DNA of 64,000 nucleotides from Haliotis cracherodii. Taxonomy: Eukaryota. The notes beneath the pieces were generated by a model. It was not told the origin of the DNA. It saw only the letters and a list, made by a program, of their open reading frames with translations, and searched no databases. Within the stretch, counting starts at the first letter, position 1, and each line of letters starts with the position of its first letter. This document shows positions 1,357 through 40,126 of the stretch, piece by piece. A program made the position numbers and the translations under genes. The stretch covers positions 6,696,001 to 6,760,000 of the forward strand of contig NW_027266266.1 in the NCBI RefSeq assembly GCF_022045235.1. The letters are read 5' to 3'.

Positions 1357-1818
1357 TTTATCATGTTTACAGGCCATGTAGGAATGTTTATCATGTTTAC
1401 AGGCCATATAGGAATGTTTATCATCTTTACAGGCCATGTAGGAATGTTTATCATGTTTACAGGCCATGTAGGAATGTTTATCATGTTTACAGGCCATATA
1501 GGAATGTTTATCATGTTTACAGGCCATATAGGAATGTTTATCATCTTTACAGGCCATGTAGGAATGTTTATCATCTTTACAGGCCATGTAGGAATGTTTA
1601 TCATCTTTACAGGCCATGTAGGAATGTTTATCATCTTTACAGGCCATGTAGGAATGTTTATCATGTTTACAGGCCATGTAGGAATGTTTATCATCTTTAC
1701 AGGCCATGTAGAAATGTTTATCATGTTTACAGGCCATGTAGGAATGTTTATCATGTTTACAGGCCATGTAGGAATGTTTATCATGTTTACAGGCCATGTA
1801 GGAATGTTTATCATGTTT
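1357..1818. repeat. 30 bp minisatellite, ~15 copies
   Basis: Unit ATGTTTATCATGTTTACAGGCCATGTAGGA. Confidence 0.95.
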
Positions 1819-6477: not shown

Positions 6478-6685
6478 TCACACAGAGGTGTGATAAACAA
6501 CTTTGTAAACTGGTTTCACATGCGCAGAACCAGGTTTGTGGACTGCGGCTGCGCTTGGAAAAGGTGGCCGTGGTTCCGGTGGAGTACTTCCGGTGGCTTG
6601 GGGACTGCAAGGTTTCTTCTTCACGGCCTTGGGATTATTGTTCTGAATCTGAAGACGCTGGACCATCAACGGCGGGAGTGGGAAC
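6478..6685 (-). CDS. TSSK-like terminal exon 12
   Basis: ctttcatcag|(E)[11 protein letters not shown]...VYHTSV*; phase matches exon 11; polyA signal ~60 nt downstream. Confidence 0.7.
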
Positions 6686-9600
6686 CTGATGAAAGCAAAG
6701 ATTGAGCGAGACTGCTGTTTCATTCCACCTAGGGGTTGATAGCATGACAGCCTTAAACACCATACTTCACTGGTGCTCAGAGCGTGTCGCTAGTCCTGCT
6801 TGAACAGGACAAATATGTTTTCTATGTTTAGATTAATTATTATTCAGTTCCAGTTTGTAGCAAAGTTGAAGAATTGAGACCTGGTTCAGAATAATAACCT
6901 TCAAATGCTACCAGTAAATGACGACAACCATTGGATTTGTCCTCGGCACAAGTAAATAGTCTCGAACTAACGTGAATTTCGAAGGCAACCATGGTTAACA
7001 CGCACGCCTTTTGCAATCCGTTCATTATCGACCAAATTGTATTTGCATACTGTTCAATCAAGCTAGCTGGAGTGAATTCAACCAGATTCTCCATATTACA
7101 AATAGTATGTCGCACATACCCTATTAGTATCATTTCTCCTTACACCCATTCCTTATTGTAACGCTATAGCTCTAAACGAAGCAAGTCTAGGTTTTCCACA
7201 GGTTCAGCTTTGAATCTCCCATTACACTGGGGCTCCCTTTCAATTTAAATGGAGTTTCAATTTAAATGGAGAGACTAAGCTTTAGTCGATATTGCACAGG
7301 ACAATGACGTTTTTGCAAGCGGCGGGGAGATCGAGGTATGAAATAGGCATATAATAACAGAGTATATAATAAACTGAATAATTGAATAATTGGACTTTGA
7401 CTGGAAATATCAACTGACCATGGGCCCTTAATCAATTTATATTCGTCTCCACATGTTAAGCTAGTTTTTACATATTCACTTGAAAATACTTCATCGTCAG
7501 AAGCTCAAGTTCAAATGTCCTACCGTGAAGATCCGCGTTAGAATTGGTCTTCAGCAACCCATGATTGTCGTAACGGATCGACTAACGGATCTGTTTATTA
7601 CAGTAAACTACAGTTATAACGAACACGCTTATAACGAACTGACGGATATAACGAACTAACTTTTTAGTCCCGACTATTTGCTGTAGTTATGCTGTATATA
7701 TGCTTATAACGAACTACGGTTATAACGAACTAAAAATAGTAGTACCTTTGAGTTCGTTATAACCGTAGTTTACTGTACTACAAACTGCCATCACATGACT
7801 TGCATAATGCTGAGTGCAGCGTTAAAAGAGAAACAAACAACTAAAGAGGCGACTAACAGATCCGGTGGTCAGGTCGCTGACTTTGTCTGGTCCAGACTCG
7901 GTTATTGACAGACCGCCGTCATATAGCTGGAATATTGCTGAGTCGGCGTTAAAGTGAGTGAGTGAGTGAGTATGGTTTTACGCCGCTTTTAGCAATATTC
8001 CAGCAACATCACGGCTGGGGACACCAGAAATGGGCTTCACACATTGTATCCATGTCGAGAATCGAACCCGGATCTTCAGCGTGACGAGCGAACAATTTAA
8101 CCACTAGGCTACCCGACCACCCGAGTCGGCGTTAAACAACAAACAAACAAACAAACAAACAAAACCAAAAACAAACATACTCATTAAGGTATGCTGGCAT
8201 GTTCGGACCATAAATTTTGAGGAACCTTTCTCTGCAGCTTTTGGATCTATTGGCGGAAGAACGACTTTCCTGTGGTTGTTGTGTGTCGGCAGCATCAGTG
8301 ACAGGAGTTGCGTCCCCCTGGAAAGAGTAAAGACATGGTGTGGTTCGAGGACCCCTCCCTTGGAGAAGGTTGGTTGGTTTGTTGTTTAACGCCGCAATAT
8401 TCCAGCTATATAATCCAGTGATTATTATCATGAGCATCGATCCACGCAATTGGGATCGATGACTTGCATCAACCAAGTCAGCGAGCCAGACCACCCGATC
8501 CCGTTAGTCGCCTTTTACGACAAGCATAGTCACCTTTTACGGCAAGCATGGGTTGCTGAAGACCTATTCTACCCTGGAATCTTCACGGGTCTATGAGTGA
8601 AGTCGATATGAATGAATTTGCCAAATGAGCCAAACGCTCAAGGGATGCAACTCCGCACAGCAAATAGCAGCGCGAAGGGCAACCCCTACAGTTTTGTATA
8701 TTTATGTGGACAACTGTAAAACCCGAAATATCATATTCTCATTTTGCTGAAGACCTATTCTACCCCCGAATCTTCACGTGTCCCTTGGAGAAGGAGAAAG
8801 GAAGGTAAACATTGTTAGTTTAAAAACACATTATCACTCATCTAATATCACCTAAAATGTTAATAACGTGGTTATCATGAACTCATAAGCGGGATACGAT
8901 ATGGCTTTAGCAACCCATGCTTGCCGTAACAGGCGACTATGCTTGTCATAAGAGGCGACTAACGGGATCGGGTGGTCAGGCTGGCTGACTTGGTTGATGC
9001 ATGTCATCGTATCCCAATTGCGTAGATCGATGCTCATGATGTCAATAATTGGATTTTCTGATCTAGACTCGTCCATTTACAGACTGCTGTCATATAGCTG
9101 GGATATGGGACGTTGAGCAACAAACAAACAAACAAACAAACACGTGATGGAGCAACATGGTAAATGTATACAAACATGTGAAATAGTGATATCTAGTATG
9201 GCTTCCAGCTGGTTACTAGGTGAGGTGAGGTGAAATGGGGATTAACGTCGCGTCCAAGATTATTGCACGTATATAGCAACGTGCATGCACGTGTATGTGT
9301 GTGTGGCTGCTTGTACTAGTCCGGACTGATGCCGATTTATAGTGCAAGCACACTGAGATACCATGCCGCAGTTTAACATGAATACTAGTACCCCACTCAG
9401 ACATAGTATACTGACTCCGAGCCAACCAGTCCTTGTCCAGACAGGGTAACAAGAAGTACCATCTTTTAACGTCTTTTGGTATGACGCGGCTGGGGATCGA
9501 ACCCCAGACCTTCCGCTCTTCGGGCGGACGCTCTACCACAAGACCACGGAGGCGGTCCAGCTGTCAACTAAGTTTCACTATAATGTAGACTAGAACATAA

Positions 9601-12600
9601 AGTCGATTTTAACATTTACTTCCCACGACATAATAATTGTATTCACTCACGGCTTCTACTTCGGGGGTTGCTGTCTCGCTGCTCTTTGACAGGTTGTCCA
9701 TGAGGGCACTCTTCGTGGTGTCGCCGTGGAGCTTCACTACTCCCCCGCCGTTCTTCGCGCCCCTCGCGTAAGTCTTGTACCGCTTCCTTGGCCCGCTAGA
9801 GGGCACTGCAGTGCAGCCCATCTGGCGACTTCCGGTGTTACCATCGTGTTGACCGGTAGAGTCGTTGAACCTATGACCATTCTGTTTACAGCTGTTTTGT
9901 AGGATCTGTGGAACAGGATATGACCCGTGTACATTTATCTAAACAATCAAATATATTCTGATACTTTTTGTACAATAACAGTTCGACCGGATGTCATGGC
10001 TTCAGAATTGTTCACTTTAAAGGGGCACTTATCGCTGGCTTCTTCTCGGCTGTCTAACACTGCCCGCTTGGGCTCATTAGCTGCCGTGTGTCGATTTGCT
10101 CGCTTACGCAACAGGGGAATTGCTGTAGATCAGTGCCCCTTTTTAACCATTTTTGACTTGAATCCCCAATTTCCCCCGATTATGACCCACGGTCTATCGG
10201 TTCATTAACATATTCAAACTCGTAACGTTTCCTCGAACATTCAGACGACAAGCTGGGATAGCTGGAATATGCAGCCCCAAACGCAACTTGCATAATCAAT
10301 CAGTCACTCTCTGGGTTTCTGTTCTTAAGGGGACCAGTCGTCTAAGGCGCCGCAAATCACTATGCAGGGTTTCGTAAACCTACGACTGTGGGTTAGAATC
10401 CTGGTCCTCCCGATTATGTTCCTAGGTTTGTCAGTTCCATACACGTGCTCTAGGGTTTTACTAAAGGCGACTATGCTTGTCGTAAGAAGCGACTGACGGG
10501 ATCGGCTCACTGACTTGGTTGATGCATGTCATCGTATCCCAATTGCGTTGATCGATGCTCATGATATCAATCACTGGCTTGTCTGGTCCAGACTCAATTA
10601 TTGACAGACCGCCGTCATATGGCTTGAATATTGCTGAGTGCGGCGTTAGACAAAAAACAAACAAACAACAACGTAAGAGCAAACAACTGTCCTCATTAGT
10701 CATACATTAACCATGTATGCTGATCATTCATATATGTTACACGTCCGACATAATGGTTACACGTTTAATGTCTAACCTCTAGAGTGAGGTGAGGTGAAAT
10801 TGGGTTTAACGTCGCGTCCAAGATTATTGCACTTATATAGCGACGTGCATGCACGTGTATGTGTGTGTGTGGCTGCTTGTACTAGTCCGGACTGATGCCG
10901 ATTTATAGTGCTAGCTCACTGAGATACCATGCCGCAGTTTAACATGAATACCCCACTCAGACACAGTATACTGACTCCGAGCCGACCAGTCCTTGTTTTA
11001 GCCCCTTAATGCCGAGCGCCAGACAGGGTAACAACAAGTACAATCTTTTAACGTCTTTTTGTATGACGCGGCCCGGGATCGAACCCTGGACCTTCCGCTC
11101 TCCGGGCGGACGCTCTACCACAGGACCACGGAGGCGGTCACCTCTAGAGTGATATGTATCTGACACGGCACGACACGAACACAAATAGCTCACCTTGTAC
11201 ACATACCACAGTGGCACTCTCATCTGGCCGTGTTGTCGTCCAGCCTTCTGACGTGTTGCTCTCTCTTTGGCCAATTCTAGCAACTGCGTCAGACGAGCCG
11301 TGGACTGTGATTGGCCCTTAAGCTTCCTTGGCGGTGCCGTCCTACCGCGTCTTCTAGGCAACTGTTTGTCTTCCTGTCTTCTCTCCTTCTCGGTCTTCGG
11401 CCATGTTTGTGGGCGTGGTTCGACTCCTTGGTACTCTTAAACACAGCACTCCAATACAACTTACTGATATGTGAAGATCCATCCGTGATGATCCGATTAT
11501 TTACAGACCGCCGTCTAATAGCTGGAATATTGCTGAGTGCGGCGTTGAACAACAAACAAACATGCGAAGATCATTCTGGGGTTTTGGTTTCTAACAGTGA
11601 GTGAGTGAGTGAGTTGGGTATAACGCCGCTTTTTAACATTATTCCAGTTATATCGCGGCGTGTCAGCTTAATGTGGGAGGAAAGCCCGAAGTGATGCAGG
11701 TCTCGGACGTTTACCAGTTTCTAACAGTGACCCGTTTCAGTCTCGCCCTTTTTCTTTTCGGGCTTTTGGTGTTGTCTTTGTAAAAGGTGGACTGGGATTG
11801 GGACATGTGGCAGTCCGTTAAAAAACAAGATTGTTGTTTAAAAACAACTAACATGGCACTAATTAAAACTATATAAATCTATAGGGGTTGTCTACATGCC
11901 ATAATAACTACACGACATTGTTTTCATTCAGTGTTTTTGTGTTTGTATGATGCGACACTAGACCACTCAAGTGCGGATCAAACATTTTCAAAAGTGACTA
12001 CATTTGGTTTTATAAAGGGGGAGGGGGGTGTCCGGATAACAAGATAACAGGCAGTTATACAGGTTATATGTGCCCACGTTCAGATGACCAACTCACCGTC
12101 TTGACATTTGCAAGTCTACCTTATTTTATGACACACGTGGACGGTTCTGGGCCCACTTGCACAAAGTGATCTTAGCGCTAAGATGGCCGTAACTACCATA
12201 GGCTTAAGATAATCTTAACTCTAAGATGGTTTTGTGCAAGTGGGCCCTGGTATGTGACTCACTCGTTTCATAAAATTGGTTTTACATGGGAGCTCGTTTA
12301 GTATTCGATATGTATCATCCCAAAACTGGCGTCCAAAGGAGATATCCCATCTTCCCCAAGCTCCTCACAGCGATAGCCCGTTCGCGAAGCTCTCTATTCT
12401 ATCGCTGCCACCAGTCAAAACTCCCCACTGTGATAGGTGACCCAAACCATGCTTGGAGTTGAACTCGCAATCGAATGACCGTTATGTTTACAAACAAGTG
12501 ACGACTGTCGTGGCACCGAATATACTTACCCCTGCTAAATTACTTGTCTTTGTTTGTCAATTTGAATCTCTATTTCACTAAAACTATCGTGTTATTGATA

Positions 12601-15600
12601 TGGTAAGAATGTAAGGGAGAAGTTAGTTGATTTTCCGTTTGTCTGCAATCTCGAACCAATCTGATTATACAAACAACAAAGTAAATTCATCTGGAAAACA
12701 TGGTTAAACGTAAACCTTTTCAAAATGAAATATGATGGCATTCCCAAAGACATAAACAAAAGTATAAACGTTACTACATTTGGGATTAGAGGGCAAATTT
12801 CAAGATTCTTGTAATGGCCGCGCCCACACTGGTGGCAGCGATGTTACCGAGAGCGTAACGAAGGTGTCACGCGCTGGGAAGGAGCGTGCATCTTCCCGAG
12901 GCAAGGGAGGTAATTGACTCAGTCTGTAAAAGTCAGGTTTCCAACCTTGCCGAACTAGGCTGGTTTTATGGAGTTATCGTTTGGCTGGATTAACGAGTCT
13001 ATGCATATTCAAATCAAAATCGCCTAACGAAATCGACATCCGGATGTAAACAACATGGATTTCAACGGGCGGATTTCGGTCGACTGCAGGATTTGCAAAG
13101 CATGTGTACCGTCAAATGGGCGTAGACAGAAAATTTCCAAATCTTTTAGTGCTTTTAATCAAGGTGCCCAAATGATTTGATGCACTTCTCGAGGTAAGAC
13201 CCGTTTTAAACCAACTGTGTTTTGAAATGTGATGTAGTCCCACTGTAGTGTAGATACCTCTTTATTTTTTAGTCATTTCTTGGAAATATGCGAGAGGTCA
13301 TTTCTTGGAAATCGAACATGCCATTTCCATTGTAGGGGTGACATATTTTTAAAATTCTAAACTTATATATGTCTACAACAAACTTTATGAATTAACATTC
13401 AACTATGTATTTAACATGTGTAAGTCTGATTAGTTAGTTTGCAATTACCCCTAGTAAATAAAAAAATAAAAATATATATGCCTCTCCAACTTGGATGTGG
13501 CAGAACTTGACGTACATCACGGTTACTCACACCTCACAGCTGTCAATGGCTGACAATCTTGTGTTTACATTCTCTGTAACTAGTTAAACGAAGCAAGATG
13601 ACAACTCCGATCTATGATGTGGTTCAACATTAACCTGTAGATATACTGGGAATGATTGAGCCTGCTGGTACATTATGATTACCAAAGGAACTGAGTATGA
13701 CTGAACAGCCGTTTTTCAGGCTGCAAACGAGCCGGATATTTTGACAGGGGTATTTGCATGGTGTGACCTGTCAATTTAAAGATTTCACGGTTTCAAAGCC
13801 AGAGTGTGAAAGCAATGAGACCTTTGTGGCCAAGAAAATGTGGTTCCTGGAGTATTTTCTTAATTGTGCGTGTTTTGAAATGAATTTGATCAAGTTTGAT
13901 AAGCGGTGACTTCAGTAATGCCAGGACATTGTTTTCGTGGCCTTTCGAAGGGAGGAGTATTTTCTGATGGATTTTCAAATCCCTTCCTGCCAAATCCTGC
14001 CACAGAAATGGCAATGAATATCGAACACAAAAAGTTTAGTAAACTACATGTTGTTATAAATAAAGTTTCTTCAAACACATTTTTATCATGTTATATTTTA
14101 CTTTCATGGTCGGTCTTTTCAATGACGATCGATATTGCCTATTCCGAGTCTGTTCACTTCGAACATGTCCCTGACAGTTTCATAAACATTTCACTTGCAT
14201 GCAAATGATATGCCTTTGTAAAGTCTTGTAATCTCATCTCCGAAGCAGTCAGGATTACTTCCTAGAAAAACATTCCGTCGCCAAAAATAACCGATATCAA
14301 ACTACCGTATTTCCTCTATTAGACGCCAGGCCGTCTATTAATTTCGCGAGAGCCATTGACTTGGCATGTATTAGAGACCGGGGTGCCGTTGTACAAAACA
14401 ACATTAGCGCTACGACTGTCGTAAGTCTATGTTAAGGTATGGGAGTTACGATCACCTTAGCGCTAAGGTGGCTTTGTACAACGGCGCCCAGGCTTGTATT
14501 AGAGACAAAGCGTGTAATATAGGAAATATCGATAGTATTACGTTTTATGTTCCTAGTGGTGACCGATGTATTTATGCGGACGTTTTTGTGTGAAAAGGCT
14601 TACTGTATTTAAAAGGGCTTTCCATAGCAAAAACGAAACCCCTTTTTAACCAATAAGAATCAAGCATTCTTCAATGTCATGGTAGAATACAATATAGATC
14701 TTATAGCCTTACAAGTGATATGAAAGATGGAAGCTGATTGGTCAATAGGAAGGGCACAGAAGGGACATAACTCGTTATAGACTCTGGTGATTCAACGATA
14801 GAGCCAAGAAATTCCAACCTAGTTCGGAAAGACTGCAATCTGGACTTTTATAGTCAGTTAACTCCTCTGCCCCGGGAAGATGGGGATATCCCTGGGTAAG
14901 ATCAAGCTGCAGTGCAGTGAATTTGCATCCCAATACTTTGCAGATCATTGTGACGTCATCAATCAAATGACATCGCTATTCCTTCAATATGGGGCATATT
15001 CTTTTCCCACGTGCTTCATCAGATTTCTATTTTCATACTGTAGTCGACTTACTCTGGTTCTTGCCCCGGCTCTTCAGAATGACTGTCTCCCCTATTCTCT
15101 GGTTGATTGTCACAGTAGACTTTGGGGTGGCGTTCGACCGACCTCTATCACCATGGTAACATAATGGCTGACTGCTCTTCTTGGAACCAGCGCCATCTAC
15201 ACGCAAGTGCTCCTTCTCCGGACCAAACTCCTCCTTGCTCGCCGTGTATGGATTCTGAAACACAGGACATATATAACTTCGATAGCGACATATAACTGCG
15301 TGAAGACTTTAATGTCTTACATTTATATTTCAACTTTTTTTTTTTTTTGGTGGATGAAATTGAATTTAACGTCGCTTTCAAGGTTATTTCACATATACAG
15401 CGACATGCATGCACGTGTGTGCGTGGTTTGCTTGTGCGGTTTACTAGTCCGAAGAAATGCCGGTTTTATACTTCTAACCAATGAGATACCACGCAGCTTC
15501 GTAACATGGATACCACTCTCAGACACAGTATACTCCGAGCCGAGTAGTCCTTGTTTAATCTCTTAAGGTTCAAATATGAAGGAATCCATCTTCCCGAGGC

Positions 15601-18600
15601 AAGGGAATTAACTGACTGTAAAAGTCCAGTTTCCACCCTTGCAGAACTGAGATGGATTTATGGAGTTATCGTTTGGCTGGATTAACGAGTCTATGCATAG
15701 TCCAATCAAAATCGCGTAACGAAATCGACATCCGGTTGTAAACAACAAGGATTTCAACGTCCAGATTTCGGTCGACTGGAGGATTTGCAAAGCATGTGTG
15801 TCGTCAACTGGGCGTAGACAGATATTTTCCAAATCTTTTAATGCTTTTAATCAAGGTGCTCACGTGATTTGATGCACTTCGCGAGGTAAGACCCGTTTTA
15901 TTTAGGAGATAAACCTACTGTGTTTTGAAATTTGATGTAGTCCCACTGTGGAGTAGATACCTCTTTAACCATGCTTTACTCTCTCTCATAAATCACTGAG
16001 CGATTGTCGTAGACACTTTCCCTACAATATCATTGTATTTTAAAATTTATTTTACGTATGAGACTTAAATACAATCTTCCGTCTGTCTATTTGTCGGTCT
16101 TGTCTGGTCATATTTAACCTCATTAATGCCGGATGAGTGAATATGGTTTTACGCCTCTCTAGCAATATTCAGCAATATCACAGCGGGTATCACCTGAAAG
16201 AAGTGAGTGAGTATTGTTTTACGCCGCGTTTAGCAATATTCAAGCACTATCACGCCGGGGGACACCAGAAAGGGCTTCACACAAATGTACCCATGTGGGA
16301 AATCGAACCGAGTCTTCAGCGTGACAAGCGAACGCTTTAACCACTAGGCTACCCGACCGCACGATGTCGGATGAAGAACATTGTTCTATAGATGCCCAGG
16401 CCTGTAAGGCTGTTTTGCTACTCACGATCCACTTGGGCCTGTTGAACTGGCGGGGGATGGGCTTCTTGCCAGTGAGCCAGGGGTCTGCCAGCACCTCCTC
16501 CACGACCGGGCGGAGCAGGGGGTTGTACTGGAGCATCCTCCGTATCAGTACCATGCAGTCTACACAACAGGGGAGACTTAAAACAACATTTTGGCGTGTA
16601 TTTCAGAGCAAGCACCTGACCCAACATACCGAAATAACCATGAGTGAGTGAGTGAGTTTGGTTTTACGCCGCTTTAAGCAATACTCCTGGAATATCAGAG
16701 TGGGGGACACTATAAATGGGCTTCACACATTGTACCCATGTCGGGAATCGAACCCGGGTCTTCGGCGTGATGAGTGAACGCTTTAACCTCAAGGCTACCC
16801 TACCGCCCCAAAATTACCATGAATAAGCAAAAAAGATATTTATTGTTTGCTCATGGTGGTATAAGCGTAAAACTGGTGTGCATACAGTGTAAATCCGCAT
16901 AGCCGAATTAAAAATCAATATATCTACGGTATTTACTTTAACAGACATATGTTTTGACGCGGAAAAATCACGGTTAGAATTTCTTCAGCAACCCATGTTT
17001 GTCGCAGGAGGCGACCAACGAGATCGGGTGGTCAGGTTCGGTTTTTCGGTTGATGCATGCCCAATTGCGATCGATGCTCATCATGTCAGTCACTGGATTG
17101 TTTGGTCCAGACTCGATTACTTACAGACCGCCGTCACATAGCTGGGAAATGTCGTTGACAGATTGATCTTCTCAATACATTTTACATCATGCAGCTATCT
17201 TTTGTGATTTTAAAACTCAGTCATTTAAAATTATGGTAAAGTTTCTTTTGACCGTCAGTATATATTCATGTGTATACATTCTTTACTTTCCGATATAAAA
17301 TACAAGATCAGCGCGCTGGACGCGCATCTATCGTTCTGTATCAACTGAGTGAGTGAGTGAGTGAGTTTAACGCCGCTTTTAACAGTAATCCAGTCATATC
17401 ACGGCGTGTCAGCTTAATGTGGGAGGAAAGCCCGAAGTGTTGCAGGTCTCAGACGTTTACCACTTAGGTGAAACCCACGAGCACGGGTATGGTGCTGAAA
17501 AACCTTGAAACATAATCGGCGCGACGCGGGATTCGAACCCACAATCACAGGTTTCTGGCATGCCTAAGGGACGCAACTCTGCACAGCGAATCGCGGCGGC
17601 TTAGTCGACTGGGCCACCCGTGCCCCCGTATCAACTGATTGGGTCTCATCTTGGTCTCATATCGGGTCGGCTCGGCCAACTATACTACTCAAAAGAAGTT
17701 AAGGACCAAGCCATGCCAGATTAACTATCGTAATATGAAAGAATAGAGTGGTCCTTAACTTCTTTTGTGTAGAACATGACAGATTAACTATGGTAATATG
17801 AAAGAATAGAGTGGTCCTTAACTTCTTTTGAGAAGTACATACTACTGAATATTTATTAAATGAAATAGCTACGCGATATATCCTAAATAACAATGAACAA
17901 CGAAGCGTGGTTTATGTCACGATGAAACATTGTTCTGTCTTGACGTCATTTATGGAAAATAGAACATGCGCGCGCAACTTGATGACGAGGAAAGTCTAGT
18001 GAGTTGTTCCCCATAATGCAGCTGGACAGCGCAGATGAACGCAATGGCCGCGCGATCGCACCCAAAAGTAGGAGAGATATGACAGTCAGTATTGGGAGAA
18101 AAGGTGCAGATAATCGACGTGAAAATTGTGAGAATACCAAACTTAACCCCCACCCCCCTGTACATGAAATGGATTTGTCCAACATTGAAGAGGTCAGACT
18201 GTATTCAGGGAGTTATTATTTAAATACTGGAAAATGTTTTCGAAGTTTGTACAATTTATTTACATTCTTGAAAAAGGTGTACAAAATGATATCTCATATA
18301 AGAAATAAACGTCTCGTGGTCGTTGTTTATCGTCCAATAAATTATATTGTACGATAAACAACTCCTACTTGTCTTTTATTTCTTAAATAATGTTGGTTTG
18401 TTTGTTTGTTGTTTTACGTCGTACTCAGCAATATTCCAGCTCTATGACGTCGGTCTGTAAATAATCGAGTCTAGACCAGACAATCCAGTTATCCACGCAA
18501 TTGGCATCGATGACATGCTTCAACCAAGTCAACGAGCCTGACCACCCGATCCCGTTGGCCGCCTCTTACGACTTAAATAATGTATTAACAAATGTAAAGG

Positions 18601-21600
18601 TTGGGCAGTATAGGACGCTACAATATCCTGGCGGTCATGTAAGAAACACTCACCAAATGAGACATTACGCTCGAATCTGAGCCTCTGCATTTTCATATCC
18701 TCGTCCATCTCGCTGAGGTGACTGTCGTTGAAAGGGAGACGGCCGTTCACCATGGCGAACAGGATGATGCCACTGGAAATACACACCCATCGGTATCAGA
18801 CAAGGTTGTGTCTTGAGCCCAATTTTATTCATCTTCTAAACGAGACAGCGTGTACTATCAAAAGGGAACGTAACCGTGGAATTTTCGCGTTATAATTTTT
18901 TTAAAGATTTCTGTTGTTGCTATTTTGTGTTGACATTGTACTTATTGATTATGCTGTTCGTGATTTTCAAAAATTTGAAATTTGATAAAATACAATTGAA
19001 ATTCATTCCATGTATTGTCAATAATGTCAAATGTAAACAGGAAATGGTAAATATATTAATTTCTGATAATACTGAAAATGTTCGCTGTAGCCATGTATCA
19101 CATGTTCCGGAATCATTGCGCATGCGTTTGCATTGTTTTATGATGCCGCACGTACAATGCCTGGAATACCCCGTTGTTGACATTCACAGGTATGTATCCT
19201 CTACGTTCCTTAATTACCTGAGAGCACATTTTCAGAAGACAAAAGTCCTGTACACTGTTTATAGCCACGAGTAAAGCATTTACTCACAGACTCCAGGCAT
19301 CCGCTCTGTATCCGTCGTACGGCTTGTTCTTTATCACTTCCGGTGCTGTGTACGCATATGACCCACAGGAAGTCTTCAGGAGCAGGTTCCGGTCTGGGAA
19401 GCGGCAGGAGAATCCAAAGTCTACAATGAAAATATGACACACATTTATAATAATAAACATGCATGTTTTCAGTATTCTGTTTTCGTATCATTGTGATAAG
19501 GAAGACTTAGTGTAAAATAATTGTACTACTTCATATGTCCCCGCGGTGATTCTGGGTTGGAATTGTCCCCAGAAACCTATGCTGGTCGGAAAAGGAGGCC
19601 AGGTAGATCGGGTTTTGTTTGTTTATTTGTTGTTTAACGCCGCTCTCAGCAATATTACAGCTATATGACGGCGGTCTGTAAATAATCGAGTCTGGACACA
19701 GCAATCCAGTGATTAATATCATGAGCATCGATCTACAGAATCATGAATCAAGAGAGGGAGCCTGACCTCCTGATCCCGTTAGTTGTCGTTTAAGTTTGTT
19801 TGTTGTTTAACGCCACGCTCAGCAATATTCAAGCTATATGACCGCGGTCTGTAAAGACTCCGGTGATGGACATCATGGGCATTTATCCACGCAATGGGAT
19901 ACGATGACATGTATCAACCAAGTCAACGAGCCTGATCCCCCGTCCTCTTACGACAAGTATCATCCCCTCTTAAGACAAGCATGGGTTGCTGAAGACAAAT
20001 TCTAACCCGTATCTTCACGGCTGCGACTCTGAGTGTATAAACGAGTATACTTCCTCATCATACTGACCTACATTCCGAAGAAATCAGTATTTCATGACCT
20101 ACATTCCTTCTGTTTATAAAGGCTTACCTGTTATTTTAACGGTTGTTTCTGACGTGATGAGGATGTTCTCACACTTCAGATCTCTGAAGACAGAAACATA
20201 CATTGAGAATATACCTCCATAATCTTTCACACAAACAGAAACATGGACCCGATTCCTCAAAACGATCGCAGGGCTAATGCGATTTTATCATCCATACTGG
20301 CTTCCGCAGGAGATATCGCTTGGATATATGAACAATGAAATTGCAATATAATGCTTTACGGGTGAGGTGAAACAGGGTTTAACGTCGCGGTCAAGATTAT
20401 TGCACTTATATAGCGACGTGTTGTTGTGCAGGTGTTACTGTGAGTGAAGTCCACCTACCTGTGCACGATGGCGTTGTTGTGCAGGGGTTACTGTGAGTGA
20501 AGTCCACCTACCTGTGCACGATGGCGTTGTTGTGCAGGTGTTACTGTGAGTGAAATCCACCTACCTGTGCACGATGGCGTTGTTGTGCAGGTGTTACTGT
20601 GAGTGAACTCACCTACCTGTGCAAGATGGCGTTGTTGTGTAGGTGTTACTGTGAGTGAAATCCACCTACCTGTGCACGATGGCGTTGTTGTGCAGGTGTT
20701 ACTGTGAGAAAATCCACCTACCTGTGCACGATGGCGTTGTTGTGCAGGTGTTACTGTGAGTGAAATCCACCTACCTGTGCACCATGGCGTTGTTGTGTAG
20801 GTGTTACTGTAGGTGAAATCCACCTACCTGTGCACCATGGCGTTGTTGTGCAGGTGTTATTGTGGGTGAAATCTACCTACCTGTGCACGATGGCGTTGTT
20901 GTGCAGGTGTTACTGTGAGTGAAATCCACCTACCTGTGCACGATGGCGTTGTTGTGCAGGAGTTACTGTGAGTTAAATCCACCTACCTGTGCACGACGGC
21001 GTTGTTGTGTAGATGTTACTGTGGGTAAAATCCACCTACCTGTGCACGATGGCGTTGTTGTGCAGGTGTTACTGTGAGTGAAATCCACCTACCTGCGCAC
21101 GATGGTGTTGTTGTGCAGGTGTTACTGTAAGTGAAATGCATCTACCTGTGCACGATGGCGTTGTTGTGTAGGCGTTACTGTGAGTGAAATCCACCTACCT
21201 GTGCACGATGGCGTTGTTGTGCAGGTGCTACTGTGACAAAAATCCACCTACCTGTGCACGATGGCGTTGTTGTGTAGGTGTTACTGTGAGTGAAATCCAC
21301 CTACCTGTGCACGATGGCGTTGTTGTGTAGATGTTACTGTGAGTGAAATCCACCTACCTGTGCACAATGGCGTTGTTGTGCAGGTGCTACTGTGAGTGAA
21401 ATCCACCTACCTGTGCACGATGGCGTTGTTGTGCAGGTGTTACTGTGAGTGAAATCCACCTACCTGTGCACGATGGCGTTGTTGTATAGATGTTACTGTG
21501 ACTAAAATCCACCTACCTGTGCACGATGGCGTTGTTGTGCAGGTGTTACTGTGAGTGAAATCCATCTACCTGTGCACGATGGCGTTGTTTTGTAGGTGTT

Positions 21601-24600
21601 ACTGTGAGTGAAATCCTGTGCACGATGGCGTTGTTGTGCAGGTGCTACTGTGAGTGAAATCCACCTACCTGTGCAAGATGGCGTTGTTGTGCAGGTGCTA
21701 CTGTGACTAAAATCCACCTACCTGTGCACGATGGCGTTGTTGTGCAGGTGCTACTGTGAGTGAAATCCACCTACCAGTGCACGATAGCGTTGTTGTGCAG
21801 GTGCTACTGTGAGTGAAATCCACCTACCTGTGCACGATGGCGTTGTTGTGCAGGTGCTACTGTGAGTGAAATCCACCTACCTGTGCACGATGGCGTTGTT
21901 GTGCAGGTGCTACTGTGAGTGAAATCCACCTACCTGTGCACGATGGCGTTGTTGTGTAGGTGCTACTGTGAGTGAAATCCACCTACCTGTGCACCATGGC
22001 GTTGTTGTGTAGATGTTACTGTGGGTAAAATCCACTTACCTGTGCACCATGGCGTTGTTGTGTAGGTGCTACTGTGAGTGAAATCCACCTACCTGTGCAC
22101 GATGGCGTTGTTGTGCAGGTGTTACTGTGAGTGAAATCCACCTACCTGTGCACGATGGCGTTGTTGTGCAGGTGTTACTGTGAGTGAAATCCACCTACCT
22201 GTGCACCATGGCGTTGTTGTGTAGATGCTACTGTGAGTGAAATCCACCTACCTGTGCACGATGGCGTTGTTGTGCAGGTGTTACTGTGAGTGAAATCCAC
22301 CTACCTGTGCACGATGGCGTTGTTGTATAGATGTTACTGTGACTAAAATCCACCTACCTGTGCACGATGGCGTTGTTGTGCAGGTGTTACTGTGGGTGAA
22401 ATCCATCTACCTGTGCACGATGGCGTTGTTTTGTAGGTGTTACTGTGAGTGAAATCCTGTGCACGATGGCGTTGTTGTGCAGGTGCTACTGTGAGTAAAA
22501 TCCACCTACCAGTGCACGATAGCGTTGTTGTGCAGGTGCTACTGTGAGTGAAATCCACCTACCTGTGCACGATGGCGTTGTTGTGCAGGTGCTACTGTGA
22601 GTGAAATCCACCTACCTGTGCACGATGGCGTTGTTGTGCAGGTGCTACTGTGAGTGAAATCCACCTACCTGTGCACCATGGCGTTGTTGTGTAGGTGCTA
22701 CTGTGAGTGAAATCCACTTACCTGTGCACGATGGCGTTGTTGTGCAGGTGTTACTGTGAGTGAAATCCACCTACCTGTGCACCATGGCGTTGTTGTGTAG
22801 GTGTTACTGTGAGTGAAATCCACCTACCTGTGCACGATGGCGTTGTTGTGTAGGTGTTACTGTGAGTGAAATCCACCTACCTGTGCACGATGGCGTTGTT
22901 GTGCAGGTGCTACTGTGAGTGAAATCCACCTACCTGTGCACCATGGCGTTGTTGTGTAGGTGCTACTGTGAGTGAAATCCACTTACCTGTGCACGATGGC
23001 GTTGTTGTGCAGGTGTTACTGTGAGTGAAATCCACCTACCTGTGCACCATGGCGTTGTTGTGTAGGTGTTACTGTGAGTGAAATCCACCTACCTGTGCAC
23101 GATGGCGTTGTTGTGTAGGTGCTACTGTGAGTGAAATCCACCTACCTGTGCACGATGGCGTTGTTGTGTAGGCGTTACTATGAGTGAAATCCACCTACCT
23201 GTGCACGATGGCGTTGTTGTGCAGGTGTTACTGTGAGTGAAATCCACCTACCTGTGCACGATGGCGTTGTTGTGTAGGTGTTACTGTGACTAAAATCCAC
23301 CTACCTGTGCACGATGGCGTTGTTGTGTAGATGTTACTGTGGGTGAAATCCACCTACCTGTGCACGATGGCGTTGTTGTGTAGGTGTTACTGTGACTAAA
23401 ATCCACCTACCTGTGCACGATGGCGTTGTTGTGCAGGTGTTACTGTGAGTAAAATCCACCTACCTGTGCACGATAGCGTTGTTATGCATGTGTTGCACGC
23501 CCTGGCTCATCTGTTTGAAGATCTTCTTGGTGAGGTCCTCACCGATGCCGCGTTGGTTGTTGTTGATGGTTTGGTTGATCATGTCCAGTAGGTCCCCCTT
23601 CTCGCAATACTCGAGGACAAGGTACACCTGGTCGGCCGTGGAGAAGTTCTCGAACACTTGAACCTGGGACGTGGACATGTGACATAGCTTCGATTAGACT
23701 TAAGTTTTGTGTCTCATCTCCTACTGGCTAACTCTGGAAGGGGGAAACCGGATGTCGATGGCGTGAGCATCTATTAGTATACTCATCACGATTGGATGCG
23801 TATACACCAAGTACTCACCACGAGTGGAGGATTTGAGGAATTGGTGAATTAGTGAGAGCCCCAAGCCAATAAAATGTTAAACAAATAGTGAGTGAGTGAG
23901 TGAGTGAGTGAGTGAGTTGGGTTTAACGCCGCGTTTAACAGTATTCCAGTTATATTGCGGCATGTTCGACAAATAACAACTAGGAGAGTGAGTGAGTGAG
24001 TTGAGTTTTACGCCGCTTTTAACAGTATTCCAGTTATATCACGGCGTGTCAGCTTAATGTGGGAGGAAAGCCCCAAGTGATGCAGGTCTCAGACGTTTAC
24101 CACTTCGGTGAAACCCACGAGCACATGTTGGTGCTGACAAACCTAGAAACATAATCGGGGCGAACCGGGATTCGAACCCACAAGCATAGGTTTCTGGCGT
24201 GCCCAAGGGACGCAACTCTGCACAGCGAATCGCGGCGCCTTAGACGACTGGGCCACCCGTGCCCCCAACAACCAGGAGAACCAGCCTGAAGAGGTTCGTT
24301 GGAGCTGAAAGTTCGCTCAAATGTTGGGATTAATTTACTCAAAGTTGGTATTTATATCTATCTGCTGTCTGAGAGTTCATATATATGTATATGTTTTTTA
24401 CTTTTTTTGGTGGGTGGGGGTGTGGGGTGTGGGGTGTGGGATGTGGGGGTGGGGAAGAGGGATATACTCACCACGTGTGGATGGTGAGGGAGTATAGAGT
24501 GGTTGTCTAGTTCACGGGGAAGGAACTTTCGGAGGAACTCTTTTGGCACCAACTTCTTGTTGATTACCTTGATAGCCACCTGGGGTGTAGAGATACAGTA

Positions 24601-26813
24601 CAACCTCTTTAGTGCGGACACCCTTTGTCCAGAAAGCCACCTTTAGGAGATTACTTCTTGGAAGGTTGGCTTATATATGAAAGGAACATCTCACATACCT
24701 CACCAGTTAATCTGGACATTTATTAATCCGAACCATCTCAATAGACATGCTACGGTCCCGACTGACAGGGTTTAACTGTGCGTTGTATATACTAATGAGT
24801 GAGTGAGTGAATTTGGTTAAAAGGAGCTTTTGAGCAGTATTCCGGTTATATCACGTGGTGTCAGCTAAATGTGGGAGGAAAGTCTTAGACGTTTACCCCT
24901 TTGGTGACCTCTATGAGCACGGGTATATTGTGCTCAAAAACTAAAAACATAATCAAAGCGGACCGGGATTCGAACCCACTATCATTGGCGTTTGCGGCAT
25001 GCTTGAGGGACGCATCTCTGCACAGCGATTTGCGCCGCCTAAGACAAAGGGGTCAAATTAGTTGTTTACAAATACATTTGACAAAATCAGTTGTATGGGA
25101 TCGCTTAGAAAGATATATTAATACAAAATAACCACATCGTAAATCGTGCATTACATTTTATTTAAAGAGCCATTTGCATGGTCCATTTTTTAGTACATGG
25201 TGCAATAATTCTGTCGTACATGTTCATATGACTTAAATATAATAGTTGTATGATATTTCTCATTATTTATAAATCCAGATTTGAAAGAATAATAATGATA
25301 ATATCAGTAAATAATGTAACCCCAATATCATGGTTCAGTCGGTACCCTTTACCGTTTTTATAATCAATATTCGTATTATTTATTTGACAAAAAACGAATC
25401 CCAACCGTGGGAGTTAAAAAAATGGATTAATTTGTTCCAGAAACAAACTCGAAAAGATTAAGCTGTCCGCGTGTTTGAAATGTAAATTTGGGGCAAATGA
25501 AGCAAATTTATTGATTTTCAAAGATCAGATTCTAAGATACCCACCAGCAGTTGTGTATTATGCGATTTATAGTTATTTTAATTGTTGAAAGTTTTTAAAG
25601 CAAATTAAATATTTATACCATGTAGAAGTATTCTTTGAGTGTTGAGAAAAGGCAAGTACAGTTCATTTTTATATAATCTCTCTAACTAACGATATTTTCA
25701 TTTGAAAATGAAACATATGATAAAATCAACTGAGAGGTATAGTTTCTTTTGCATTACAGTAACTTATGTCATGAATGAGGATAAATTTTGTATGTACATT
25801 TGATTGTTCCAGCCCAGTGAGTGAGAGTGATTTTACGCCGCTTTTAGCAATATTCCAGCAATATCACGGCGGGGACACCAGAAATGGTCTTCACACATTG
25901 TACCAATGTCGGGAATCGAACCCGGCGTGACGAGCGAACCACCGTAAAAAACTGGTTTAAAATTGGTCTGCAGCCACCCATGCTTGTCCTAAGAGGCGAC
26001 TAACGGGATCGGGTGGTCAGACTCGCTGACTTGGTTGATGCATGTCATCGCATCCCATGTGCTTAGATCGATGCTCATGATGTCAATCACTGCATTGTCT
26101 GGTCTGTTATTTACAGAACGCATAATTAAGTTGGAATATTGCTCAGTGCTGCGCTAAACAACAAACAAACAATCGAAATAATTCTTCAATGTGCCGTATC
26201 ACAAGGGATCAAGCCTACTTCAGCCGTAAGTTAATGGTAATTAACAACAAGTACACGCTTTGCCCCTATACAACGATACTGTTACACGGATTGTACCCAA
26301 GAATTAATAAAAAAAAAACCGTGGGGGAGTTTTACCCAAGAATTAATAACGACAAACGGGCGGTCGGGTAGCCTAGTGGTTAAGGCATTCGCTCGTCATG
26401 CCGAAGACCAGAGTTCGATTCCCGACATGGGTACAATGTGTGGAGCCCATTTCTGGAGTCCCCCGTCGTGATATTGCTGGAATATTGCTAAAAGCGGCGT
26501 AAAACCATATTTACTCTCACTCAATAAAGACAAACGGTATACTCACGAACGGGTTGCTACCATCCAGGGTCTCAGACAGTCCCTTGCATCGAGCGAGTTT
26601 GGCTGCCGATACTTCAGCGAGACTGACTTTGGCGTATGCCCCTTCCCCCAAAGTCTTACCGAGTAGTCTGTACCCCCTGCCCAGACACTCTGTCTTTACA
26701 ATCTCACTCTCGGTTTCGGACTTACACGCGAAGAGTTTTCCTTTCTTACCCCCCTCGGCCGCTGGTACATTAACCCTGCGATTGTAAGGTAGCTTAATCG
26801 TATCCGTTGCCAT
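6478..26813 (-). CDS. TSSK5: Testis-specific serine/threonine kinase, TSSK5-like; 12 coding exons, ~686 aa
   Basis: Exons 26547-26813, 24472-24579, 23464-23663, 20128-20183, 19288-19420, 18654-18772, 16426-16559, 15053-15254, 11194-11435, 9651-9905, 8181-8317 and 6478-6685 join in frame (2061 nt) with GT..AG introns. Motifs: [39 protein letters not shown]. The insert between the Gly loop and VAIK, plus the multi-exon structure, resemble TSSK5. AATAAA (minus strand) at 6413-6418. Confidence 0.85.
7601..7775. mobile_element. Tc1/mariner (pogo/Tigger-type) MITE
   Basis: TA|CAGTAAACTAC...GTAGTTTACTG|TA; second copy at 33793-33973. Confidence 0.8.
8181..8317 (-). CDS. TSSK-like exon 11
   Basis: ctctttccag|[16 protein letters not shown]...PAYLN(E)|gtatgt. 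Confidence 0.7.
9651..9905 (-). CDS. TSSK-like exon 10
   Basis: ttccacag|[10 protein letters not shown]...ATPEVEA|gtgagt, 255 nt, phase 0/0. Confidence 0.7.
10783..11139 (-). mobile_element. SINE family D (tRNA head, (CACCT)n tail, ~355 bp)
   Basis: TGGTAGAGCG...GGTTCGATCCC head; TSD ACCTCTAGAGTGA at 10775-10787 and 11140-11152. Copies at 9219-9557, 32813-33147 (TSD GATTATCGATAAGA), 37540-37893, 42992-43486, 49808-50148. Confidence 0.85.
11194..11435 (-). CDS. TSSK-like exon 9 (basic tail)
   Basis: Open frame ...[16 protein letters not shown]...PLWYVYK|gtgagc. The acceptor is a weaker tttaag, so the 5' boundary is less certain. Confidence 0.6.
12150..12246. mobile_element. PIF/Harbinger-type MITE
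   Basis: TIR GGCCCACTTGCACAAA with CTG TSD; a related copy at ~14381-14490 is nested in another MITE. Confidence 0.7.
12889..14882. mobile_element. Putative DNA transposon with CATCTTCCCGAGGCAAGGGA termini
   Basis: Left end at 12889, inverted degenerate end at 14810-14882. Left ~380 bp repeated at ~15588-15966; 85 bp mini-version at 4827-4911; ends also at ~34245-34370 and ~44090. Confidence 0.5.
15053..15254 (-). CDS. TSSK-like exon 8 (C-terminal tail)
   Basis: tttcag|[13 protein letters not shown]...SRGKNQ|gtaagt, phase 0 to 1. Confidence 0.75.
16426..16559 (-). CDS. TSSK-like exon 7 (end of kinase domain)
   Basis: tag|(D)[28 protein letters not shown]...KWI|gtgagt. Confidence 0.9.
17347..17627 (-). 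mobile_element. SINE family A full copy with TSD
   Basis: TSD GTATCAACTGA at 17338-17348 and 17628-17638. Confidence 0.85.
17683..17838. mobile_element. Tc1-like MITE (TACTACTCAAAAGAAGTTAAGGA termini)
   Basis: Inverted ends; copies at ~35972-36263 and ~44638-45083, each with a nested SINE. Confidence 0.6.
18654..18772 (-). CDS. TSSK-like exon 6
   Basis: cag|[39 protein letters not shown]|gtgagt. Confidence 0.9.
19288..19420 (-). CDS. TSSK-like exon 5 (activation segment)
   Basis: tag|(D)[43 protein letters not shown](L)|gtgagt. Confidence 0.92.
20128..20183 (-). CDS. TSSK-like exon 4 (catalytic loop)
   Basis: cag|(R)[18 protein letters not shown](D)|gtaagc; too short for the ORF track. 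Confidence 0.92.
20419..23490 (-). repeat. 53 bp tandem array (~58 units) derived from the exon-3 3' end plus 5' splice donor
   Basis: Sense-strand unit TAACACCTGCACAACAACGCCATCGTGCACAG|GTAGGTGGATTTCACTCACAG; the unit nearest the exon is the real exon/intron junction at 23464/23463. Confidence 0.95.
23464..23663 (-). CDS. TSSK-like exon 3
   Basis: cag|VQVFENF...[12 protein letters not shown]...[10 protein letters not shown](R)|gtaggt, phase 2. Confidence 0.92.
24472..24579 (-). CDS. TSSK-like exon 2
   Basis: cag|[36 protein letters not shown]|gtgagt. Confidence 0.92.
26547..26813 (-). CDS. TSSK-like exon 1 (ATG, Gly-rich loop)
   Basis: MATDTIK...[17 protein letters not shown]...GSNPF, then GTGAGT donor, phase 0. 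Confidence 0.9.
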
Positions 26814-36793: not shown

Positions 36794-37026
36794 NNNNNNN
36801 NNNNNNNNNNNNNNNNNNNNNNNNNNNNNNNNNNNNNNNNNNNNNNNNNNNNNNNNNNNNNNNNNNNNNNNNNNNNNNNNNNNNNNNNNNNNNNNNNNNN
36901 NNNNNNNNNNNNNNNNNNNNNNNNNNNNNNNNNNNNNNNNNNNNNNNNNNNNNNNNNNNNNNNNNNNNNNNNNNNNNNNNNNNNNNNNNNNNNNNNNNNN
37001 NNNNNNNNNNNNNNNNNNNNNNNNNN
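36794..37026. other. Assembly gap (N run); second gap at 38473-38606
   Basis: N characters. Confidence 1.
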
Positions 37027-37076
37027 GAGAGTGTGAGTATGTGTGTGTGTGTGTGTCTGTGTATGAGAGTGCGCGC

Positions 37077-37113
<37 letters not shown>

Positions 37114-37536
37114 TTTGCGTGAGCGCGTGTGTGTGTGAGTGTATGCGAGTGTGTGTGCAGTGTGTGAGTGATTGTGTGTGTGTATGCGAGTGAGTGTGTG
37201 TGTGTGTTAATGTAAGTGTGTGTGTGAGTGTGTGCAGTGTGTGTGTGCGAGTGGGCGTGTGTGTGAGTGGATGTGTGTGTACGCGAGTGAGTGTGTGTGT
37301 TAATGTAAGTGTGTGTGTGAGTGTGTGTGTGAATGTAAGTGAGTGTGTGTGTTGTGAGTGTATGCGCGTGTGTATGCAGTGTGTGTGTGCGAGTGGGCGT
37401 GTGTGTGAGTGTGTGTGCAGTGTGTGTGTGCGAGTGGGCGTGTGTGTGAGTGTGTGTGGGCGTGTGTGTGAATGTAAGTGTGTGTGTGTGTGAGTGTGTG
37501 TGTGAGTGTGTGTGCGAGTGTGTGTTGTGAGTGAGT
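37027..37536. repeat. Compound (GT/GA)n low-complexity tract next to an assembly gap
   Basis: Direct observation. Confidence 0.95.
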
Positions 37537-40126
37537 AAGAGGTGAGGTGAAATTGGGTTTAACGTCGCGTCCAAGATTATTGCACTTATATAGCGACGTG
37601 CATGCACGTGTATGTGTGTGTGTGGCTGCTTGTACTAGTCCGGACTGATGCCGATTTATAGTGCTAGCTCACTGAGATACCATGCCGCAGTTTAACACGA
37701 ATACCCCACTCAGACACAGTATACTGACTCCGAGCCGACCAGTCCTTGTTTTAGCCCCTTAATGCCGAGCGCCAGACAGGGTAACAACAAGTACAATCTT
37801 TTAACGTCTTTTTGTATGACGCGGCCCGGGATCGAACCCTGGACCTTCCGCTCTCCGGGCGGACGCTCTACCACAAGACCACGGAGGCGGTCTGAGTGAG
37901 TAAGAGAGTGTGAGAGTTGGAGGTAGGGTGTTGGGTGCAAGCAACTGTGCCACATTCCTGTTTGATTTGAACTCGTGTCGCCCTAATATAATACAATGTC
38001 ATGCATATTGATTGTAATAAAATGATATGAATGTTTGCCTTTTATATTGACACAGCAGTAGTTGTCATGACGACATACAATACAACAATTAACAGGTATA
38101 GAAAGCAGGTATTGCATGTACTTACAATGGACAGGAAATTCTCATTTAGAAAGACACATTTAGTACACGCCAATTCCACAAACATATTACGACATTAAAA
38201 TACGGTATAGGGTATACGTGAAGTGCCCAGGGGTAGATCAAGGCCGGATGCAGCATTTTGCAACGTCAATAAAGTATTTTTGGTGCATATGAATATCATA
38301 AAGCCATTCTACACCAAGCCACATAACGTGGAAACTGTGTTGGGAATATAGTCTCGTGTATAAATACCGCTTGCATCATATCAACCAAACAGTGTGGTTC
38401 CGGTGTGGCACAAATGGCAATGGAATCGGTGAGAGCACCAATCCCCTATGGATATATGTAAAATAAATAATANNNNNNNNNNNNNNNNNNNNNNNNNNNN
38501 NNNNNNNNNNNNNNNNNNNNNNNNNNNNNNNNNNNNNNNNNNNNNNNNNNNNNNNNNNNNNNNNNNNNNNNNNNNNNNNNNNNNNNNNNNNNNNNNNNNN
38601 NNNNNNGAAAGTTAACTTGGGTCAGTAATGCCCGAATTTGCGAGGTTTCACTGTATTCAATAAGTTTTAGCAGCCTTCCACTTCAAGCTCTTTTAAAAAG
38701 ACATAGAAGGGGAGCACGAGTGGAGTTGATAATCAAGGCATAGCAGAGAAGCCACCGTTGATGTTGACGGACAGGGCGTGAAGTGTTGATACCACTGGTC
38801 AGTGCTGATAGTGTAGATACTCCCACAGCTCATGACCTTCATATTTCGACGGACGCCTTGTTAAAGCGGCATTGCCGTGTGGTGAGGAGAACAGGTGTGT
38901 GAGTGAGTGAGTGAGTGAGTTGGGTTTAACGCCGCTTTTAACAATATTCCAGTTATATCACGGCGTGTCAGCTTAATTTGGGCGGAAAGCCCGAAGTGAT
39001 GCAGGTCTCAGACGTTTACCACTTCGGTGAAACCCACGATCACGGGTATGGTGCTGACAACCCTAGAAACGTAATCGGGGCGAACCAGGATTCGAACCCA
39101 CAATCATAGGTTTCTGCCTTCCCCTAGGGACACTTAGTCTACAAAAGAAATGTTTCTCATATTTTTGCGTAGATGGCCTTTTCATACAGCGATTGAAAAG
39201 GGACAGCCAGACACACTAACTAAGAGTGAGTATCTAATTCCAACAGCGAAAGAGTTGTAAGTACGTTCCATGAACGTGGAAATATACAAACAGACAAACA
39301 AGCAAACAAACTGTAGTTTTTTTATCATGGCCTTAAGGACAGGAGGAACCATACAATACTGTACTATTTTAAACATGTAGAAATTTAAATCATAGTCGAA
39401 TTCGAAACCGGGGAAAATGCATTGACCCGACAGGCTTAAAATGACCCGCAATTAGCAGGTACCGAATACACGTTGTTAATTCGAACCCCTCAACTCTTGA
39501 GACGAGGCAATGTTATGACGCAGGCAGACATTCTATCTGTAGAATAACCTAACATCGGCACTTCGCTTGTCTCGAACTACAGATAATTCGACATACAATT
39601 TGAACAGTCTCGAGGACAACTTGTGACGGGACAGTCGCGGTATGTGCATATTATACGGGCGCTTCATACAGTTTTACTCGCACCTTACCATCTATCGTTA
39701 CCAACTCGTGTTTTTCCGGGACTCGGGTTCCGTCTTAGCGCAAATGGGCATACCTAAAACAATTGTCAACTCGTTGCGCAATGGTTCGCATATATTTCCC
39801 CATATATTATAATATATATTTCAGATGCAATTTAAAGCACATCTGGACATGCGGAATTATACAGTATGATTGAATACATTTAACTGTGTCTTGGAGATAT
39901 TTTTCGATGCAAGACATATGTAAAATCAAAAATTCTGTCTGAGGGTTTCTTTGACGGAGAAATTCTGATTGGTTTGTCGTATTTTCGCACGTAACAATCA
40001 TCGATAGGGGGGTGAGTCTTCTTGCAGGTTACGGAAAGGAGCGAGTGATGACTAATGACTTCTTTCTCTGTTAGTTTGTGTTAAGCAGCAATATTTAGGA
40101 CTCCAAGCCAGAATTATTCAGAATCC

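Follow-up and report, generated by a model that had tools for sequence, protein, structure and literature searches.

Can a gene carry its own 5' splice site 55 more times behind the authentic donor and still yield an ordinary message? The question is raised by intron 3 of a testis-type, TSSK1-like kinase gene of the black abalone Haliotis cracherodii. The gene lies in a 64,000-nucleotide stretch of contig NW_027266266.1 (positions 6,696,001 to 6,760,000; hereafter the window, to which positions refer unless stated otherwise). Intron 3 begins with some 3 kb of tandem repeat whose unit is the end of exon 3 plus the start of the intron. The array is probably a junction-spanning intronic minisatellite, of the type called a mirage in amphioxus and represented in human by F7 intron 7 (IVS7), with splicing from the first donor and the repeat carried as a near-neutral passenger.

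Tandem Repeats Finder reports one array at 20420-23494, with a period of 53, 58.3 copies, 92% matches and a score of 5198. Cut on the minus strand in the phase used by the sequence-only reading, it consists of a native unit (23495-23443), 57 more units and an 18-nt partial unit. Fifty-four units are 53 bp long, two are 52 bp and two are 46 bp. Each contains the last 31-32 nt of exon 3 and the first 21-22 nt of intron 3, and because the first monomer lies across the exon/intron boundary, the authentic donor is repeated along the array. The boundary splits the arginine codon of the HRD motif (HR/D, the slash here and below marking the splice point). The sequence-only reading had described tandem copies of an exon end and its 5' splice site at HR/D, not a random satellite, and the 58.3 copies and the split Arg codon agree with it. 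The unit measures tens of base pairs, and the array is intronic and directly adjoins exon 3, which ends at 23464. When the entire 1.18-Gb assembly was searched at the DNA level, the unit matched this locus only.

The array consensus is TAACACCTGCACAACAACGCCATCGTGCACAG/GTAGGTGGATTTCACTCACAG and the native unit is CAACACATGCATAACAACGCTATCGTGCACAG/GTAGGTGGATTTTACTCACAG, with 5 differences in 53 positions. The first difference is a C in the exon and a T in every copy; it may simply mark the duplication boundary, which would give a unit of 31 nt of exon and 22 nt of intron. An ATG (Met) codon in exon 3 reads CTG in all copies, and the Met is common to four Haliotis species. Intron 3 is 3.28 kb long, and ~3.0 kb of that is array. 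The 236 nt on its acceptor side do not derive from the repeat. Without the extra copies the intron would be ~257 nt long, the shortest in a gene whose other introns measure 515-3617 nt.

The length of the array, or its existence, could in principle be an assembly artefact, since assemblies can mis-size tandem arrays and an amphioxus mirage was mis-assembled in a draft genome (PMC3087553). The xgHalCrac1 assembly (1,182,252,637 bp in 81 scaffolds) was built from HiFi reads at 37x with a mean read length of 15.7 kb (PMC9709981). The mean read is five times the array length, and single reads therefore span the 3-kb array, which makes a gross artefact unlikely. The units also carry non-periodic variants, some private and some shared by blocks, unlike a collapsed or looped assembly. 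Taken together, an artefact is highly improbable.

The same variants bear on how the array grew. Two neighbouring blocks of five units each (23071-22807 and 22806-22542) are alike at all but 2 of 265 positions (99.2% identity), a sign of recent block duplication, and a run of five near-identical units, one of them with a deleted donor, recurs at a lag of 16 units. The array has no regular higher-order repeat. Mean identity among array units is 92.7%, and the native unit is an outlier, on average 87% and at most 90.6% identical to them. A boundary unit that takes no part in homogenisation should diverge in this way, as in the amphioxus globin mirages, whose boundary units escape homogenisation and whose arrays are unstable in length (PMC3087553). 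Coding function constrains the native unit as well. The proposed history begins with a 53-bp tandem duplication across the exon 3/intron 3 boundary, which would have put a second exon end and donor into an existing intron of ~257 nt. Unequal exchange or replication slippage, with duplications of multi-unit blocks, may then have expanded it to 57 extra copies. At the distal edge the shortened last unit adjoins a fragment of a very abundant interspersed repeat, so a later deletion or rearrangement there is likely. That fragment (20361-20421) gave 1904 first-look candidates genome-wide, and 39 other genomic copies were scored at 90-97% identity. More fragments of the same repeat, with the motif ...CGTTAAACCC... 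and a (CACT)n-type tail, occur at about 23887-23990 and about 16220-16400. The array is probably length-polymorphic.

The host is an intact gene. In an exon-by-exon mapping, XP_071092981.1 (P0271, 686 amino acids) is encoded at 100% identity by 12 exons from 26813 to 6478; every intron border is GT-AG, and the exon lengths total 2061 nt. The protein was reached by a full-length search with the H. asinina orthologue, whose cluster contains it; exons were searched singly, and full-length comparisons were made with database proteins. Exon-sized minus-strand open frames at exons 3, 4 and 5 match the Pfam domain Pkinase (PF00069), and the motifs GxGxxG, VAIK, HRDLKxxN, DFG and APE are readable in the protein, as befits a TSSK-like kinase. 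RefSeq names it TSSK1-like, and its bivalve orthologues are named MARK2-like. Exon 3 matched a 93%-identical Haliotis protein in a HMMER search of all proteins; a word search with exon 3 alone returned no match within its length range, outside which the longer proteins fall. The family to which the gene belongs is conserved across further abalones as well as limpets and bivalves. Orthologue models of H. rufescens (XP_048257092), H. rubra (XP_046581819) and H. asinina (XP_067681302) cross the HR/D junction with the same 13-residue reading. In a protein search of its own genome, the other TSSK-like genes are distant (at most 41% identity) and mostly intronless. Many such intronless open frames, of 285-376 amino acids and at most 41% identical to exon 3, occur genome-wide (e.g. 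C12:70004330, C23:16245346 and C56:66588233), with clusters on C23 near 16.13-16.26 Mb and on C12 near 28.41 Mb.

The RefSeq model of XP_071092981.1 joins 23464 to 20183, which is splicing from the first donor. All extra copies lie downstream of the authentic donor; with exon 3 spliced from 23464 to exon 4 at 20183, the whole array would be removed as part of an ordinary intron. A duplication across a donor puts every extra copy downstream, and a rule by which the first donor is used therefore leaves the message unharmed. By analogy with the studied cases the first donor would be the one used at this locus too, and the RefSeq model and the intact, conserved frame are in keeping with that.

The extra copies offer abundant competition. 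Over the 58 units the donor 9-mer is CAGGTAGGT in 48 (the native unit included), CAGGTAAGT in three, CAGGTAGAT in three and CTGGTAGGT in two, and it is lost in the remaining two. The prediction of more than 50 near-perfect decoys is thus borne out: 55 decoys have GT, and 47 are identical to the authentic donor 9-mer. That every unit is a decoy donor holds for 55 of the 57 extra copies; two have lost the donor, and the last unit is shortened. Variation per site is 0.043 in the nine donor columns versus 0.044 in the rest, and 0.043 in exon-derived versus 0.045 in intron-derived positions. The donor columns are as variable as the others, so nothing suggests that decoys are being preserved or disabled, in a test whose power is limited by concerted evolution.

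The consequences of using a decoy were followed in a frame walk, in which short slices of the window were joined in a script. The canonical junction reads through HR/D. Read-through past the first donor gives R and then TAG, one 32-nt pseudo-exon shifts the frame and leads to a stop after 13 codons, two shift it and stop early, and a third opens with an in-frame TAA. The frame is kept only by direct use of the first donor. On each of these points, namely the immediate in-frame TAG on extension to a downstream donor, the frame shift with one or two pseudo-exons, the TAA in frame with three and the restriction of an intact HRD kinase to the first donor, the walk agrees with what the sequence-only reading had stated. 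The functional proposals of that reading fared differently. Poison splicing is without support here and goes against precedent, the known cases using the most upstream donor and at most the next two. The acceptor of the 32-nt pseudo-exon has a pyrimidine tract of 0.45, the poorest in the gene, whose 11 real acceptors range over 0.55-0.80. A role of the array as a U1 sink is implausible, as its 55 sites stand on one tissue-restricted transcript against the abundance of U1 in the cell.

The array had also been proposed as a ladder of recursive splice points. The AG before each decoy GT would serve as a 3' splice site, the intron would be removed stepwise, and the exon 3 end and its donor would be regenerated each time. 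Splicing to any CACAG/GTAGGT would indeed restore the native junction, and in the array consensus yUnAy-like motifs (CTCAC, TTCAC) precede that AG by ~35 nt, and no usable AG intervenes. In a recursive site a strong 3' splice site, made of a long pyrimidine tract and AG, runs directly into a 5' splice site, and the acceptor half is weak here: over positions -23 to -4 of the CAG/GT the pyrimidine content is 0.50 and no run exceeds 2, a poorer tract than at any of the 11 real acceptors. The intron is also only 3.3 kb long, and known recursive sites are located in very long introns. A recursive ladder is very unlikely.

A further rival gives the array a quantitative effect on splicing, as a modifier. 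Decoy donors, either the first one or two or the three with perfect consensus, would be used in a measurable fraction of transcripts, these would meet the in-frame TAG, the message would decay or give a truncated N-lobe, and kinase output would fall with copy number. Besides the number and likeness of the decoys and the immediate TAG in every exon extension, this would draw on several points that weigh against exclusive first-donor splicing. Three decoys, with CAGGTAAGT, are a perfect donor consensus, and in F7 constructs perfect-consensus pseudo-sites, and only these, drew some splicing (PMC1557585). IFI6, with 25 pseudo-sites, and CBS use the two nearest pseudo-sites constitutively (PMC1557585). 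The first-donor rule is established in mammalian cells, not in molluscs, and RefSeq models could rest on protein homology and not on RNA. Against the modifier stand F7, LMNB2, PDGF and the amphioxus genes, which use the authentic site only (PMC1557585, PMC3087553, PMC3902484), the donor columns with no sign of selection, one RefSeq isoform with the first donor, and a gene intact and conserved from gastropods to bivalves. A modifier acting as a by-product of the repeat is unlikely; a selected 'tunable' device is much less likely still, and highly improbable in itself. We infer that the decoys would be silent or nearly so in vivo and that the array is probably near-neutral in selective terms. 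The first two decoys, whose last exon-like bases are 23411 and 23358, may see low-level use, and the three with perfect consensus (22987, 22722 and 22040) may be used too; either would give transcripts with a premature stop.

The array might also record the birth of the intron. In the Rogers model an intron arises by tandem duplication of an exonic AGGT segment, of which the array would be the remnant, and the sequence-only reading had found that it fits. About 92% of intron 3 consists of copies of the flanking exon end, and new introns have been suggested to arise by way of mirage repeats (PMC3087553). The phylogenetic distribution contradicts this origin. A 102-amino-acid open reading frame (P0015) agrees in all of its first 51 residues with M. 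edulis XP_071180268.1 (P0005), as far as ...NGVVHR, after which the frame runs into non-coding sequence; the M. edulis protein continues with DLKCEN at that point. Eight more short open reading frames break at the same HR/D point, and the next codon always begins with T, as expected for AG/GT. The HR/D intron is therefore present in Mytilus at the same position and phase and predates the gastropod-bivalve split, and the array did not create it. An intron gained in this way would be absent in outgroups and would have both splice sites from the duplicated exon segment; here the unit already holds 21 nt of intron, and the last 236 nt, the acceptor side, are not repeat-derived. This origin can practically be dismissed.

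A broader reading can also be framed. Exon/intron junctions could be preferred birthplaces of minisatellites in these animals, through mutation tied to splice sites or to transcription, and array length could set the output of a sperm-expressed kinase via decoy use and nonsense-mediated decay. Two arrays on the same chromosome begin at exon ends or donors. A 39-bp x 31.9 array on the minus strand (L022:378-1621; G000:C3:4339378-4340621) starts at an MMP-like exon end, ...QALYG/GTGAGT, and a 59-bp x 31 array (L023:1317-3146; G000:C3:22973316-22975145) starts at ...ACACAG/GTAAGG. Another abalone, H. discus hannai, has in intron 3 of a different TSSK1-like gene, one of 4 exons, a 27-bp minisatellite that varies in length and is depicted with 62 repeats (PMC6905558), from which large polymorphic intronic minisatellites seem common in abalone. 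A link to a junction was looked for in the two other minisatellites of the window (1357-1818 and 53246-53470), and none was evident. The combined reading is a long shot. If true, it would turn the array into a naturally occurring, inherited dial of gene expression in an endangered species that spawns by broadcast.

Coordinates of the gene, the array and its notable units are collected in Table 1.

Table 1. Features of the TSSK1-like locus and its intron 3 array (window positions; the slash marks the splice point)
Feature	Position	Strand	Remarks
Coding span, Haliotis cracherodii TSSK1-like gene	6478..26813	-	12 coding exons, 2061 nt = 686 codons plus stop
Exon 3	23464..23663	-	200 nt; ends with ...AIVH + AG of the HRD arginine codon; PF00069 E = 3.7e-13
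Authentic 5' splice site CAG/GTAGGT	23458..23466	-	donor of the RefSeq model
Native unit, repeat template	23443..23495	-	last 32 nt of exon 3 + first 21 nt of intron 3
Extra copies	20420..23442	-	57 units of 53 bp + 18-nt partial unit; 55 with GT decoy donor
Paired 5-unit (265-bp) blocks	22542..23071	-	recent block duplication
Perfect-consensus decoy CAG/GTAAGT, unit 9	22981..22989	-	
Perfect-consensus decoy CAG/GTAAGT, unit 14	22716..22724	-	
Perfect-consensus decoy CAG/GTAAGT, unit 27	22034..22042	-	
Unit 19	22443..22488	-	46 bp; donor gone by 7-bp deletion
Unit 35	21602-21647	-	copy of unit 19 with the same 7-bp deletion, 16 units (841 bp) away
Interspersed-repeat fragment	20361..20421	-	~60 nt; directly after the shortened last unit
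Non-repeat rest of intron 3	20184..20419	-	holds the real acceptor ...tttctgtcttcag
Exon 4	20128..20183	-	56 nt; opens with (R), completing the split Arg codon

Some further features of the window are recorded here. At exon 11 (8181-8317) isoforms X1 and X2 of the H. rufescens orthologue differ by 11 amino acids at the exon end, the X2 match ending at 8210, which suggests an alternative donor unrelated to the array. The minisatellite at 1357-1818 has a 30-bp unit in 15.4 copies with 97% identity; its unit holds an acceptor-like TTTATCATGTTTACAG/G, and no adjoining exon or coding frame is evident. The repeat at 53246-53470 has a 45-bp unit in 5 copies, likewise with 97% identity. A (GT)n tract of ~250 units at 37031-37533 lies beside a masked N run (36794-37026), and a second N run is at 38473-38606.

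The array is of interest mainly for the natural test that it offers of how a mollusc chooses between donors. With one real donor followed by 55 GT decoys, it puts 5' splice-site choice to a harsher trial than do the human genes listed in PMC1557585, where pseudo-sites number no more than 25, and its host, a lophotrochozoan, would extend the test of the rule that the most upstream donor wins to a new group. If the first junction alone is used in abalone testis RNA, the rule holds outside vertebrates and lancelets as well; otherwise the repeat is a brake on a conserved kinase, with a strength that depends on copy number. For a critically endangered species such arrays probably offer hypervariable markers; for gene-prediction programs they are a trap.

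The closest known counterpart is human F7 intron 7, where the first element of a 37-bp variable number tandem repeat lies across the exon 7 boundary (Borensztajn et al. 2006, PMC1557585). That intron has 5-9 identical donors, and the 4-8 pseudo-donors are functional when tested, yet the most upstream donor alone is used, a choice that the authors ascribe to 5'-to-3' oriented scanning (PMC1557585). The abalone array shares with it a first monomer that spans the boundary, identical intronic pseudo-donors and a product altered by downstream use. It differs in size: each of its 58 copies includes 31-32 nt of exon, whereas F7 has 5-9 copies with 4 nt each. F7 is also mammalian and its splicing was tested experimentally, whereas the gastropod array is known from sequence and a gene model.

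Donors reiterated 10-25 times by a minisatellite are also listed for IFI6 (6-16) intron 2, CBS intron 13, LMNB2 and PDGF intron 4 (PMC1557585). The minisatellites of these four genes span the boundary like that of the abalone, and use of the nearest two pseudo-sites, as in IFI6 and CBS, would in the abalone give a premature stop. In amphioxus, mirages are tandem duplications of exon/intron boundaries that are reported to leave regular splicing undisturbed (PMC3087553, PMC3902484). Those of Adh3, BflGb6/9, TnC and PGBD5 resemble the abalone array in being minisatellite-like boundary duplications whose units keep the AG/GT signals. They differ in having 3-6 units (BflGb6) or a tandem triplication (PGBD5) of 60-160 bp, in including acceptor-side arrays and in belonging to another phylum; the units of Adh3 measure 10-72 bp. 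Recursive sites and decoy or poison exons share with the array the AG/GT juxtaposition and the premature stops on inclusion. The abalone differs from them in acceptor tracts weaker than any real one in the gene, a pseudo-exon of 32 nt and a short intron. Junction-spanning repeats of this kind are thus already known from lancelets and several human genes, and the abalone array, larger than any case in PMC1557585, is a striking but ordinary example of them.

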